A stretch of DNA of 64,000 nucleotides, taken from positions 124,001-188,000 of the IMG/VR virus record IMGVR_UViG_3300023174_000040; one strand, given 5' to 3'. Position numbers and translations under genes: made by a program. Under the pieces are notes generated by a model that did no database searches, was not told the origin of the DNA, and saw only the letters and a list, made by a program, of their open reading frames with translations. This document shows, piece by piece, positions 46,407 to 62,411 of this stretch; positions within the stretch are counted from its first letter, which is position 1; each line of letters starts with the position of its first letter.

Positions 46407-46479
46407 GCGGCTTTAGCTCAATTGGCAGAGCAAGGGGCTTTTAACCTCTAGGTTCCGGGTTCGATTCCCGGAGGCCGCA
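46407..46479 (+). tRNA. tRNA-Lys(TTT)
   Basis: acceptor GCGGCTT/AGGCCGC; AGGGG-CT-TTT-AA-CCTCT; TTCGATT T-loop; no encoded CCA. Confidence 0.95.
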
Positions 46480-47095: not shown

Positions 47096-47449
47096 ATGAC
47101 TACCTTGACTAAAATTATAATGCCAAACGTGGAAGTTCTTCGTAAGACTGGTTATAAGGTTCGTGTTTATCACGGGCGAACTTATCTCCGTTGTGAAACT
47201 AATGAAAGGCTTAATACTCCAGAGATCGTTTGTGAGTATATGAGCAAGCGTGAATATGAACACTTCAATAATGAAGTTCGCCGGGTGAACTGGGAACTCA
47301 GTTGCAAGGGCGGCTTTACTATTGTGGAGATTACTACTCCTGATGGTCGTGATCTGAGGGGTAAGTTTAATGTTCCAGCAGGCGGAATGTTTAATCGTAA
47401 ACTGGGCGTGAAGATTGCTACTAATCGGGCTCTTAAGAGTGGGGCATAA
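47096..47449 (+). CDS. hypothetical protein
   Basis: AAGGA RBS. Confidence 0.6.
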   Translation: MTTLTKIIMPNVEVLRKTGYKVRVYHGRTYLRCETNERLNTPEIVCEYMSKREYEHFNNEVRRVNWELSCKGGFTIVEITTPDGRDLRGKFNVPAGGMFNRKLGVKIATNRALKSGA

Positions 47450-47810
47450 AATGAAGATTTTTGTAGTATTTGATTTTCCGGAAATTAAAGATGCTAATAG
47501 CGAGGAAGCCACTTTTGAGATTGATAGTCTGAGTGAGGATGTCAATGGTCTTGGTTATAATTGGTATATTGATGAAGTTATAGGAGAAGAGGATAAAGGT
47601 TGACCAATATCCTCTATTAGATTATAATAGAGGTATTATGGAAAAATATAATTGGATTGTTTGGAAGAACAACCGAATAGCAGGGTATGTATCTGCTTAT
47701 AGCGAATGGGACGCAATTAGATTTGCCAGAATGAAGTTTGGTTGTGAAACCTGGGTAGAAAGAACGGTAGAATCTGGTACGGTGTGAGGGCGTCACACGG
47801 AGAACTCTAG

Positions 47811-48041
47811 ATGCTAGACGATATTGACTTTAGTGATTTCATTCTTGGTGGTGAAACTGAAACCGCTCAGAAGAAGAATAAGAGAATCCCCCTTGAAGTT
47901 TTCCTCAAGAGTATTGTAGAAGCCGTCAAGAATGGCGGAAACAGTATTAGTGTTGCAAATGAATTGGGGATCTCTCCTCAAGCAGTAAGGCAGCGTTGTC
48001 ATAAACTCCGGGCTAAGGGAGCCCCTGTGCCACAATGGTGA
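47811..48041 (+). CDS. HTH protein, paralog 3 of 6
   Basis: GGNSISVANELGISPQAVRQRCHKLRAKG. Confidence 0.75.
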   Translation: MLDDIDFSDFILGGETETAQKKNKRIPLEVFLKSIVEAVKNGGNSISVANELGISPQAVRQRCHKLRAKGAPVPQW

Positions 48042-48326
48042 ATCTTATGGATAAGGAACAGGCCACACTATTTTGTAAGATCGCAGGTAAACTTTCTTAT
48101 TCAAAGAGTTTAACTCAAGATAATGTTCTCAAGAATAGTTTAGATGATATTCTCGAGATGATTAGTTTGTATTGTGATACCGCCCCTGATAATCTACTTC
48201 GTAATAATATCGACGTTGTTATGGAGCATAAGAATTGGCAGATACAAAAGGGTTTGGTACAATAAAAACCCCCAAGAGGTTTAAGTCTTGGGGGTTTACA
48301 CCAAAAGTTTTCAGATTTGGTACGGT

Positions 48327-48413
48327 GGAATCTTGGCCGAGCGGATTATGGCAGCGGTTTACTAAACCGCCGAAGGTTAAAATCTTCCGGGGGTTCGAAT
48401 CCCTCAGATTCCG
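48327..48413 (+). tRNA. tRNA-Ser(ACT), class II
   Basis: acceptor GGAATCT/AGATTCC; G73; GCGGT-TT-ACT-AA-ACCGC; long variable arm; TTCGAAT. Confidence 0.9.
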
Positions 48414-48466
48414 TTTTATGGAATAATAATATGGATTGGAACGGTTTTCGGTACGGAATAAAAAAG

Positions 48467-48854
48467 ATGCGTAAGATTGAACAAGAGATGATTGATAGCA
48501 TCTTGAACAAGAAGAATCATTCTTGTGGCAACACTAGGGTTGAAGTTGCCGATGATGTGATTCTTGTCTTTTTGTTTAATAACCTGATTGCTAAAATTAC
48601 CAACAAGACTGTAGGGATTAATAATCAGGGATACACTACATATGTTACCAAGAGCCGGCTTAATTGTATCCTTCGTAAATTTTGTGAAGGTAGAAATATT
48701 TACCAGAAAGATTTCAACTGAAGGTAGAAATATTTACCAGAAAGATTTCAACTGGTATATTAGTGGCGAGCCCATATTAAACAATAGTTCAGAATACCCC
48801 AGTAATGTTTGGAATTACTTTCCAAATGTGGTACTATTGAAAAGTTTTGAATGA
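48467..48854 (+). pseudogene. phage gene frameshifted by 34-bp tandem duplication
   Basis: TGAAGGTAGAAATATTTACCAGAAAGATTTCAAC x2 (48685-48752); removing one copy joins MRKIEQ... to ...LLKSFE. Confidence 0.7.
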
Positions 48855-49247
48855 AACAATACGTCATAATTGATACAAAGAAAAAATTTGTTGATGGTGA
48901 ATATCCGTCAGGTGGTTTTGAAATATATTTATTGAGTGATGGTAAAGAGTTATATATCGACTCTAGTCCCGATTGGGATAGTGTATCAAATTTTGTGAAG
49001 ATGGCCAGTAAAAATTCTACCATTCAGGTTGAATACAGGTCTCTGCTAAATAATAGTAATGTTTTACGTTCACATTTACTATGAACAAGGGCAAATCAAA
49101 TACGGCCCATATGAGAATCCAGAAACATTACATAATTTTTTGGATAATCTTCCTTATGATGAAAATTTAATTGTCATGGAAACAGTTAAGGAAGAAACGG
49201 CCCGATAGTTTTTGGTACGGTAGAGTAGTAACGAAAGGATAGAAAAA

Positions 49248-49604
49248 ATGGAACATTATCGTTATTATTGCACTGTTAAACTCAACAACATTGAGGACAG
49301 GCTCAATATTTATAACTGCGATCCCGGTGATGCCACTATGTGGTACGGCGGAATCTGTGAAGTTATGGAAATCTTTGGAGGTACGGTTAGTAACCTTATG
49401 GGTGAACCTGTAACTCAGGATCAAATCCTAGAGGAATTTAGGAAGGAAGAAAGTGACGCTAAACTTAGTTTCTGCCTAGCGACTGGCATGACCCGCCGTG
49501 ATGCTAGTTCTGTGACGGTTAGTTTCAAACCTTCTGTGAATGTTTCTTCTGAGAACCCTGTAGACGAAAATAACAACAATAGTCCACTAAGGTTCCCAGA
49601 ATAA
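49248..49604 (+). CDS. hypothetical protein
   Basis: after motif 49214. Confidence 0.6.
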   Translation: MEHYRYYCTVKLNNIEDRLNIYNCDPGDATMWYGGICEVMEIFGGTVSNLMGEPVTQDQILEEFRKEESDAKLSFCLATGMTRRDASSVTVSFKPSVNVSSENPVDENNNNSPLRFPE

Positions 49605-50363: not shown

Positions 50364-50438
50364 GGCCCTATCGTATAGCCCGGTCTAGTACATCCCCCTT
50401 TCACGGGGAAAACATCGGTTCAAATCCGATTAGGGTCA
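50364..50438 (+). tRNA. tRNA-Glu(TTC)
   Basis: acceptor GGCCCTA/TAGGGTC; TCCCC-CT-TTC-AC-GGGGA; TTCAAAT. Confidence 0.92.
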
Positions 50439-52824: not shown

Positions 52825-53944
52825 TACAGGTATCCTATAAGCGGTGGAAGTCAAAAACGCCACTGGACGTTAGACCAGTATGGATACTTCTAAGGAAAAG
52901 AAAATGTATTGGATTTCTCGCTGGAAAGTTTTCACAATGAAAAACTGGATTTGCTACAATCTGTTTGGTGAACATCCAGATGATGTTGACACTTTTGGCA
53001 TGGTTAGTGGGCTAGGCATTTTGGCTTTCTTGATTTTTTGGACTAGTTATCTTTTTATCTATATTCCTCTTTATTTCTGTCGCTAAAGGATTGAACTAAT
53101 GGATACCATTGATACTCTCAAGATTTGATACTCTCAAGATGCTCAGGTGATACTCTCAAGATGCTCAGGATTTTTGTGGATACTGCTCCCCTGAATAGTC
53201 AGGGTATGGTTGAGCCTGATACTCTCAACTTCATTAGCATGAGGCTGGGTAGTATTGTTGAAACTCTGGAGCGAGAAAAAACTCTCTCTGATGAACTCCG
53301 TCAGATTTTGGTACGGTAAAGGTTTGTCCTAAACATCACTAAACATCACTAAAGAGTAATAAAAATGACAATAACAGACATTTTCATCATCGGTATGTAT
53401 CTAACTAGTCTTTTTGGTACGGTTGTGATCGTAGCGAGTTTCTTTTGGGTGATTGACACTTTGGTCAATGCACTTTACAAGCCAACCTCTAAGATTAAAA
53501 CCATGATTGCTGAGGATGGTAATGAATGGCAGGTGGGGTACATTGACGAGTTCCCCGGCTATAAGAAACTTTTTTAGTACGATCAATCATCAAGGAGAAA
53601 ACCAATGAACGACTTCTACGATGGATTCTATGAAGATTGGTGGGGGACTAAGAATGTGAAGGGTCACGACGCCCACAAGGGATACAATAAACACGATATT
53701 GCCTCAAGGAGAAACTATCGGGACAGGGTATTAGAATACCTTAGACTGGAGTTTTGTGATATTGGGGATTGGTGGCATCTCCCCATCAGCGGTGTTAATA
53801 TCAACAGGGTATTGTTAATCAGCCTTATTAACGACTGCCAGAATGATAATATGAAGATCAACAACGCCAGCGGTGTTGTCTATGAATGGCTGAAGGGCAG
53901 GAATCTGATTTAGTACGGTGAATAGGCAACAGAGGAGAGTAACA

Positions 53945-54265
53945 ATGCAAGAACAAGTCGAACTTTGGCTCGCTGCTTTGACTGAGAAGTCTAACACCAC
54001 TGGGGCTGAGACTAAATACATTCTTGAACCGGGGCGAAAGTATACTAGAGTGGTTCGTCAAGAGCGTTGGCTGGGTAGTAACGGGGAACCGCTGTGGGCG
54101 GTTAACAAAAGTGTCCATGCCTTTATAGACCAAAATGGGGATATTTATAAGGCAGCAAGTTGGAAGGCTCCGGCCAAAAATGGAGCAAGATTTAATGTTG
54201 TGAACGATATTCAACGGTTGGTCGAAGTTTGTGATCCCTATGGTAGTTATCTCTACAAGAGGTAA
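53945..54265 (+). CDS. T4-like-phage hypothetical protein
   Basis: GRKY...VHAFID..GDIYKAASWKAPAK..RFN. Confidence 0.7.
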   Translation: MQEQVELWLAALTEKSNTTGAETKYILEPGRKYTRVVRQERWLGSNGEPLWAVNKSVHAFIDQNGDIYKAASWKAPAKNGARFNVVNDIQRLVEVCDPYGSYLYKR

Positions 54266-54881
54266 GATCAGGTACGGTTATCAACCAGAGGAGAATAACA
54301 ATGCTTTGGCAAAAGAAAAAGAATCGGTATAATACCAAGCCGTATTACGAAGCAAAAGAGGGAGATGTTGTGTATCAACTCCGATATATTCCCTTCAAGG
54401 GTTGGCAAGCATCAAGGCAGGAAGGCAACAGTTGCACCCTGCCGGGAATAAAGAAGGACATGGCGGAGGCTATGGGCTGGTGCATGAGTAACCTTTCGGT
54501 ACGGTAGAGAGATATGGAAAACAGTTTTTACGGTTTCTGGTCAAAGGGAGAAAAAATGCCAGACGATACAAAAACTAGTAGTGGTCTTGACCGGCAAACT
54601 TTGAGTTTCCTTGAAGATTATTACGCAAGGGAGACTGTGAAGCCGGTTTCAAGCCTTATCGAAGCCGCCACACAGTTTGAAAAGGAGCCAGATTTTAAGA
54701 ACTATCTGGCTATGAGGGATCTTTTTAGGGATATTGAAGCAAATATGACACGGAGAGACGCCTTCCGTTGTCATAATCGGTAAAGGATAAGATTCGGTAC
54801 GGTTAGGGTTTGTTCCGACAGCAAGCCAATGAGGCAAGCGGGAACCAAAGGGTTGGTAACTATAAGCAGGAGATGATTACT

Positions 54882-55142
54882 ATGGGTCGCCAAGTTGGTC
54901 AGAAGGGTGTTGATCTTGAGACGTTTCTCACCACGGTTATCGAAGTGCAGCGGGCTGGTGGCAGCGTCGAGGACGTTGCAAGCAAGTTGGGCATCGTTCC
55001 GGGTTCGGTGAGTGTTCGTCTGAGCCAGTTGCGGAAGAAGCACGGGCTGAACATCCCGAAGTTTGAGGGTGGTGGTCGCACCAGCAATACCAAGGAGCGT
55101 GCGACGGAGATTCTCGCCAGCCTTGGCGTCGAGATGCTCTGA
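54882..55142 (+). CDS. HTH protein, paralog 5 of 6
   Basis: GGSVEDVASKLGIVPGSVSVRLSQLRKK; GC hairpin 55154-55189. Confidence 0.8.
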   Translation: MGRQVGQKGVDLETFLTTVIEVQRAGGSVEDVASKLGIVPGSVSVRLSQLRKKHGLNIPKFEGGGRTSNTKERATEILASLGVEML

Positions 55143-62339: not shown

Positions 62340-62411
62340 TGCCCGGTAGCTCAAAGATAGAGCGGCTGACTTTGGATCAGCGGGTTGCAGGTTTGAATCC
62401 TGCCCGGGCAT
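62340..62411 (+). tRNA. tRNA-Gln(TTG)
   Basis: acceptor TGCCCGG/CCGGGCA; GCTGA-CT-TTG-GA-TCAGC; T-loop TTTGAAT. Confidence 0.88.

Follow-up and report, generated by a model that had tools for sequence, protein, structure and literature searches.

A natural serine tRNA with an ACU anticodon in a lake-water jumbo phage and its relatives in viruses and bacteria

INTRODUCTION

Why would a phage carry a serine tRNA with an A at the wobble position, and which codons could such a tRNA read? The bacterial norm for the serine codons of the split AGN box is a tRNA with the anticodon GCU, and the near-absence of tRNAs with an unmodified wobble A, above all in split boxes, is a recognized puzzle. Here, we analyze a gene for tRNA-Ser(ACU), which places A34 in that box, from a lake-water jumbo phage. 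The gene lies in a window of 64,000 nt, the whole stretch of DNA analyzed, which corresponds to bases 124001–188000 of a 323,267-bp IMG/VR virus record that is approximately 64% complete according to CheckV; coordinates are those of the window unless marked as record positions. The record has a GC content of 35.8%, and its open reading frame (ORF) coverage is normal under the standard code (table 11). A megablast search against GenBank phages gave no match to the phage, and nine of ten large phage proteins tested gave no informative match in PHROGs.

RESULTS

The phage gene encodes a class II serine tRNA with A34

ARAGORN predicted four tRNAs in the window, among them tRNA-Ser(act) at 48326–48414, and the Rfam model RF00005 matched 48327–48413 with all 71 model positions aligned (49.8 bits, E = 1.2e-7). 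The gene (48327–48413, plus strand) specifies a class II tRNA without an encoded CCA, and its anticodon, ACT (A34, C35, and T36; 48361–48363, plus strand), lies within the loop TTACTAA. An earlier note on this DNA had described a class II tRNA-Ser with this anticodon and had pointed out that A34 falls in the split AGN box, where bacteria normally use GCU; ARAGORN, Rfam, and the sequence itself agree with the coordinates and the anticodon, and the placing of A34 and the bacterial norm were both correctly given. The acceptor stem (GGAATCT/AGATTCC, 7 bp) is followed by the discriminator base G73 at 48413, the anticodon stem (GCGGT/ACCGC, 5 bp) closes a 7-nt loop with U33, the variable arm (48372–48387) has a 6-bp stem and a 4-nt loop, the T loop reads TTCGAAT, and the D arm contains C11:G24. 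The cloverleaf and the long variable arm are those of a bacterial-type class II tRNA-Ser. G73, G1:C72, G2:C71, A3:U70, and C11:G24, which we take to be the serine identity elements of E. coli tRNA-Ser, are all present. Seryl-tRNA synthetase (SerRS) recognizes its tRNA by the acceptor stem, G73, and the long variable arm, not by the anticodon. Because the synthetase ignores the anticodon and the identity elements are intact, charging with serine is expected.

A sigma-70-like consensus match (TTGGCA, a 17-nt spacer, and TACAAT, with TG; 48235–48263, plus strand) is located 64 nt upstream of the tRNA, and a G+C-rich 12-bp hairpin (48266–48297) between the upstream ORF and the tRNA has a terminator-like score on the minus strand. 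The other three tRNAs of the window, identified by both ARAGORN and Rfam and all on the plus strand, are tRNA-Lys(UUU) at 46407–46479, tRNA-Glu(UUC) at 50364–50438, and tRNA-Gln(UUG) at 62340–62411, and they belong to the same dispersed phage tRNA set. Between 44000 and 60000, the GC content of the window is 0.39–0.455, compared with 0.32–0.35 in the preceding 20 kb, and this region holds dense small plus-strand ORFs with the tRNA genes dispersed between them.

Independent assemblies agree on the wobble base

The phage is present in lake and freshwater metagenomes of more than ten studies, dated from 2017 to 2025. We compared Logan contigs from four independent freshwater runs and studies, taken as assembled contigs rather than raw reads, over window positions 47300–49400. 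The check proposed in the earlier note, whether G might be found at base 48361, returned no letter but A in the contigs of all four independent runs. Two of the four contigs are identical to the window across the tRNA; one comes from a strain with approximately 97% identity, in which four other tRNA positions have changed and the A at 48361 is kept; and one is a different contig with a homologous tRNA. A sequencing or assembly error at this base was ruled out by the independent assemblies together with the presence of A in the whole family described below.

A Logan contig from a close strain (a 2017 freshwater run) skips the 141 bases from 48244 to 48384, which take in the promoter-like site, the hairpin, and two-thirds of the tRNA from its 5′ end. 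The skip may represent a natural strain that lacks the tRNA or an artifact of the assembly graph, the latter because the joint falls within sequence shared with another tRNA-Ser contig from the same run. A close-strain contig without most of the gene implies that the tRNA may be dispensable.

tRNA-Ser(ACU) forms a conserved family in viruses and bacteria

An exact scan of IMG/VR for the 18-nt anticodon arm, in its ACU and GCU versions, located the ACU arm in 82 viral contigs and the same arm with GCU in 99, so the gene does have counterparts in other viral contigs. A scan of prokaryotic genomes, with one genome per species, returned at least 120 loci with the ACU arm, and ARAGORN confirmed tRNA-Ser(ACU) in at least 118 bacterial genomes (118 of the 120 loci listed). 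The phage tRNA, previously treated as a one-off, therefore takes its place among 82 viral and at least 118 bacterial copies, numbers which argue that tRNA-Ser(ACU) is an overlooked natural tRNA type and not an error. Among the bacterial matches listed, most are on Patescibacteria chromosomes, in contigs of up to 1.1 Mb; the others listed come from Phycisphaerales/Planctomycetota and Verrucomicrobiota metagenome-assembled genomes (MAGs). In the Planctomycetota and Verrucomicrobiota MAGs, the ACU gene has housekeeping neighbors, such as xanthine dehydrogenase, MoeA, DXP synthase, and isocitrate dehydrogenase. Of 301 evenly sampled Patescibacteria genomes, approximately 15–17 had a convincing ACU copy, as judged with a structured pattern that was noisy (approximately 40 matches to the control pattern); the tRNA is thus recurrent in this group but not universal. 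The Phycisphaerales ACU tRNAs are 79–81% identical to the window tRNA, a likeness that the search pattern in part imposed. Among GenBank phage isolates, the nearest have a tRNA with UGA or GCU, not ACU.

Some ACU loci are titled uncultured Gammaproteobacteria or Pseudomonadales. They have the same tRNA sequence type as loci from Gottesmanbacteria and Levyibacteria and come from MAGs of approximately 1 Mb; the Gammaproteobacteria and Pseudomonadales labels of these MAGs are probably wrong.

A34 occurs in 47 viral and 108 bacterial unique sequences of the family, in which the stems are intact and co-vary and the serine identity elements are kept. Across 133 unique ACU tRNAs, the pairs of the acceptor, D, and T stems and most pairs of the variable arm are paired in 82–100% of sequences, with many pair types and many double (compensatory) changes, the usual 13:22 position excepted. 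The first five variable-arm pairs alone are kept in 82–100% of these relatives and likewise occur as many pair types, and a compensatory swap of A-U to G-C in this arm sets the window tRNA apart from the sequences closest to it. G73 is present in 131 of the 133 tRNAs, G1:C72 in 132, G2:C71 in 133, A3:U70 in 130, and C11:G24 in 95; the anticodon arm was fixed by the design of the search and is uninformative on conservation.

We built a tRNA tree with position 34 masked; its columns are few and its resolution is weak. In this tree, 15 viral ACU rows, the window tRNA among them, form a starred clade. This clade is nested in a larger starred clade of 37 viral ACU, 24 viral GCU, and seven bacterial ACU rows, and at least ten A/G switches at position 34 are required over the whole tree. 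The nesting among viral GCU rows suggests that the phage ACU tRNAs derive from phage-type GCU serine tRNAs and are not copies from Patescibacteria. As read from the tree, the switch from G34 to A34 appears to be recurrent, having taken place several times in phages and bacteria.

ACU replaces GCU in viral arrays and accompanies it in bacteria

The two tRNAs share a class II body, the GCGGT/ACCGC anticodon stem, the loop TT-N-CTAA, and the serine identity elements. GCU was found in none of the 82 viral ACU loci and ACU in none of the 87 viral GCU loci, and because they never occur together in one locus, we conclude that both occupy one position in phage tRNA arrays. The ACU-bearing arrays are made up of tRNAs for Asn (GUU), Thr (UGU), Gln (UUG), Lys (UUU), Glu (UUC), Arg (UCU), and Gly (UCC); they do not contain Thr (CGU), Lys (CUU), Leu (GAG), Gln (CUG), or Thr (GGU), each of which is found in 11–15 GCU loci. 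A tRNA-Ile(UAU) is also common in the ACU-bearing arrays (24 of 82 loci). Other A34 tRNAs were seen in IMG/VR tRNA arrays, namely Thr (agt) in four loci, Leu (aag) in two, Ser (aga) in two, and His (atg) in one, and it may be generally true of phage tRNA sets that they include unusual wobble bases.

Both tRNAs are present in nine of ten whole bacterial genomes checked, with the ACU and GCU genes approximately 200 nt apart in two of the Patescibacteria genomes among them, and half of the 8-kb bacterial loci listed contain both. Their presence side by side indicates that ACU is an extra isoacceptor in cells. Freshwater Planctomycetota (four loci) and Verrucomicrobiota (two loci) with 51–60% GC have a chromosomal ACU gene plus GCU. 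These GC-rich bacteria use fewer AGT than AGC codons, and since they keep the ACU gene, AT-richness alone cannot explain tRNA-Ser(ACU).

AGT codons are frequent where the ACU tRNA is found

Another genetic code was ruled out for the phage: its ORF coverage is normal under table 11, and the codons AGA and AGT stand at an invariant Arg and at conserved Ser residues, respectively. Of the 7,381 Ser codons in 387 long ORFs from the 323-kb record, 1,818 (25%) are AGT, level with TCT, which bears out the earlier impression that AGT is common here. A supporting count, that 11 of 13 LLxSF motifs use AGT, could not be reproduced; we found six of 13 in a six-frame search and six of seven in frames of at least 50 amino acids. 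The AGT/AGC ratio of the phage (1.63) is at the low end among T/C-ending codon pairs, so the abundance of AGT reflects general AT-richness and no special preference for AGT.

The phage encodes tRNAs for Lys (UUU), Glu (UUC), Gln (UUG), Leu (UAA), Gly (UCC), Arg (UCU), Asp (GUC), Met, and Ser (ACU), and each except those for Asp and Met fits the codon used most, or jointly most, for its amino acid: AAA (70% of Lys codons), GAA (75% of Glu), CAA (73% of Gln), TTA (32% of Leu), GGA (41% of Gly), AGA (56% of Arg), and AGT (25% of Ser). Outside the window, ARAGORN in intron mode predicted tRNA-Arg(UCU), tRNA-Asp(GUC), tRNA-Gly(UCC), and tRNA-Met(CAU) with inserts of 27–202 nt. These insert-bearing tRNAs are at record positions 90541–91017, 106394–106493, and 118779–119043, and Rfam also recognizes two, as tRNAs of excessive length (140 and 99 nt).

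We compared codon use between viral loci with either anticodon, at approximately 2,300 codons per locus and with statistics that ignore relatedness. In IMG/VR ORFs, ACU loci have 16.6 AGT per 1,000 codons and GCU loci have 12.8 (p = 2e-6), and when each unique tRNA is represented by a single locus, the figures become 16.1 and 11.8 per 1,000 (p = 4e-6). Lower GC explains part of the AGT excess in ACU loci, and after adjustment for GC the effect is +2.4 (t = 2.8). The frequencies of AGC and AGA do not differ between viral ACU and GCU loci, and in the full locus set AGT/(AGT+AGC) is 0.60 for ACU and 0.56 for GCU, which is not significant (p = 0.21). Of the three proposals in the earlier note, codon supply in an AT-rich phage is the only one to gain support: the A/U-ending top codons are matched by phage tRNAs and AGT is more frequent in ACU loci.

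Escape from an anticodon nuclease is a doubtful main driver

A different reason to keep A34 would be resistance to a host anticodon nuclease that cuts tRNA-Ser(GCU), such that AGY decoding survives the depletion of that tRNA. The phage is equipped for tRNA upkeep. It encodes an RNA ligase of the T4 Rnl1 type (record 53885–54940, outside the window; phrog_562, E = 1.3e-59), two CCA-adding-type enzymes, and a transfer-messenger RNA (tmRNA; record 113483–113842, outside the window) that has the tag GTVNYAMAA and adjoins tRNA-Leu(UAA). Rnl1 in T4 repairs cleaved tRNA, and the presence of such a ligase in this phage suggests that its host attacks tRNAs. It has also been proposed that phage tRNAs evade anticodon nucleases through changes in the loop (PMC10264068). 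However, our literature search found no nuclease against tRNA-Ser(GCU), and Ser(GCU) is described as untargeted in mycobacteria (PMC10264068). The ACU gene is also chromosomal beside GCU in Patescibacteria, Planctomycetota, and Verrucomicrobiota, which would have no obvious need to escape a nuclease of their own, and its presence in those chromosomes weakens nuclease escape as the main driver. Furthermore, an A34 tRNA would read AGC poorly and so make a weak substitute for GCU, and across viral loci the presence of ACU follows AGT density. Nuclease escape may play a part in why tRNA-Ser(ACU) is kept, but it is not the best-supported driver, and we consider it unlikely to be the main one.

The tmRNA of the phage had no BLAST match in five Planctomycetota/Verrucomicrobiota genomes.

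Wobble inosine and misreading of AGA are improbable

The earlier note also raised the idea of deliberate mistranslation: if A34 were deaminated to inosine by host TadA or by a phage deaminase, the tRNA would read AGU, AGC, and AGA and insert Ser at AGA Arg codons. E. coli TadA does modify some anticodons other than ACG, such as that of Phe-tRNA(AAA) (bioRxiv 10.64898/2026.05.15.725136), and the phage itself encodes a 141-amino-acid protein with a cytidine deaminase (CDA) fold, directly upstream of the Rnl1-type ligase. The codon evidence is set against this. AGA makes up 56% of the phage Arg codons (1,960 codons) and is served by a phage-encoded tRNA-Arg(UCU), it specifies an invariant Arg in a conserved phage protein, and it is undepleted in ACU-bearing phage and Patescibacteria loci (12–17 per 1,000 codons). 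The loop UUACUAA presents UACU, with U36 in place of the required G36, whereas TadA needs UACG (PMC13170351), and in E. coli the A34 of an ACU tRNA escaped deamination (PMC11066159). Given a major and invariant Arg codon, an unsuitable loop, and the E. coli result, mistranslation via inosine is unsupported, and we judge it very unlikely.

The phage deaminase (record 53463–53888, outside the window) is divergent; it has invariant HSE and PCxGC motifs and scores below the Pfam cut-off for PF00383. Its family is well conserved (62–93% identity) and found on jumbo-phage contigs of up to 490 kb. Its stop codon is overlapped by the start of the RNA ligase gene by 4 nt, but this adjacency is not conserved in relatives, where the deaminase has other neighbors. 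The record, itself approximately 64% complete, contains no match to the MafB19/TadA Pfam family (PF14437). The best matches of the protein are dCMP, cytidine, and blasticidin-S deaminases, with TadA at rank 41, and sequence, profile, and fold searches favor dCMP and cytidine deaminases over an identification as TadA; it looks most like a dCMP deaminase.

Readings in which the gene drifts neutrally or decays, stems from an assembly error, or goes unexpressed are scarcely credible. The close-strain contig that lacks the 5′ two-thirds of the gene is outweighed by conservation across the family's 47 viral and 108 bacterial unique A34 sequences, which largely refutes these readings, and by independent assemblies from 2017 to 2025 that agree on A at 48361.

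DISCUSSION

A probable dedicated reader of AGU

We observed an intact gene, conservation and covariation in its relatives, a wide distribution, and a link with AGT use; the account that we consider probable is that tRNA-Ser(ACU) is a functional phage serine tRNA, charged by SerRS, that retains an unmodified A34 and acts as a dedicated reader of AGU within a tRNA set for A/U-ending codons. The tRNA would have arisen by a switch from G34 to A34 in a phage lineage of GCU-type serine tRNAs. Once expressed, as we infer it to be, as part of the phage set serving A/U-ending codons, it would receive its CCA end from one of the two phage nucleotidyltransferases or from a host enzyme. Two proteins of the PolyA_pol family are encoded in the record outside the window (205465–206778, 437 amino acids; 232139–233344, 401 amino acids); both are probably CCA-adding enzymes, and two such enzymes fit a tRNA gene without an encoded CCA. 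The host seryl-tRNA synthetase would then charge the tRNA, and A34, if left unmodified, would pair with U3 in Watson-Crick geometry and restrict reading to AGU. In this way, tRNA-Ser(ACU) may supplement or replace the wobble reading of AGU by the host tRNA-Ser(GCU).

Relation to known tRNAs

For all their likeness in body and array position, the two serine tRNAs should differ in what they read: GCU pairs with AGC in Watson-Crick fashion and with AGU by wobble, whereas ACU, with A34, is expected to read AGU by Watson-Crick pairing and little AGC. The closest experimental counterpart is an engineered tRNA(ACU) with the same anticodon in E. coli (PMC11066159; bioRxiv 10.64898/2026.05.15.725136). 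As an orthogonal tRNA, it kept an undeaminated A34 and read AGU at 9.4% and AGG at 0.36%, with AGC and AGA below detection (PMC11066159), and overexpression of Ser-tRNA(ACU) on a native backbone improved the growth of E. coli (bioRxiv 10.64898/2026.05.15.725136). Taken together, the engineered tRNAs had an unmodified A34, were AGU selective, and were neutral or beneficial for fitness (PMC11066159; bioRxiv 10.64898/2026.05.15.725136). Those are laboratory constructs on M. jannaschii or E. coli backbones, whereas the phage tRNA is a natural, conserved gene known from sequence.

Mycoplasma tRNA-Thr(AGU) and tRNA-Leu(AAG) of lactic acid bacteria resemble tRNA-Ser(ACU) in that an encoded A34, besides that of Arg (ACG), has been retained in evolution, and they are found mostly in AT-rich genomes (bioRxiv 10.64898/2026.05.15.725136). 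Unlike tRNA-Ser(ACU), they serve four-fold boxes in which misreading is harmless, and they have replaced the GNN gene. tRNA-Ser(ACU) belongs to the split AGN box, shared with Arg, which AGA encodes in this phage, and stands beside GCU in bacteria. The tRNA sets of T4-like cyanophages (PMC3152331) are similar to the present one in being small and in having anticodons that fit preferred A/U-ending codons, but such sets in AT-rich phages mostly use U34 for NNA codons, whereas tRNA-Ser(ACU) uses A34 for an NNU codon of a split box. We found no description of A34 serving a split-box NNU codon in the literature searched. A 2026 survey of 4,047 bacterial genomes in GtRNAdb reported that split-box ANN tRNAs are sporadic and always accompanied by the GNN form (bioRxiv 10.64898/2026.05.15.725136). 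Our literature search, which was incomplete, found no paper describing a natural bacterial or phage tRNA-Ser(ACU), and automatic annotations may list it.

Significance

A broader claim, to which we give equal weight for and against, is that tRNA-Ser(ACU) constitutes a widespread and unrecognized class of split-box A34 tRNAs, derived repeatedly from GCU, with an unmodified A34 and reading only AGU. The range claimed for this class takes in freshwater phages, Patescibacteria, Planctomycetota, and Verrucomicrobiota. If true, it would contradict, with an example from nature, the view that unmodified ANN anticodons are almost universally absent, and phages would use this form nearly as frequently as the canonical GCU. 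Clear structural selection conserves Ser(ACU) across 82 viral contigs and the genomes of at least 118 bacterial species, and annotators should not dismiss ACU serine tRNAs as errors. These tRNAs offer a natural system in which to test why A34 is usually avoided, how specific the A34:U pairing is for AGU, and how misreading of the neighboring Arg codons is prevented. For the phages themselves, tRNA-Ser(ACU) would be an added way of supplying U-ending codons.
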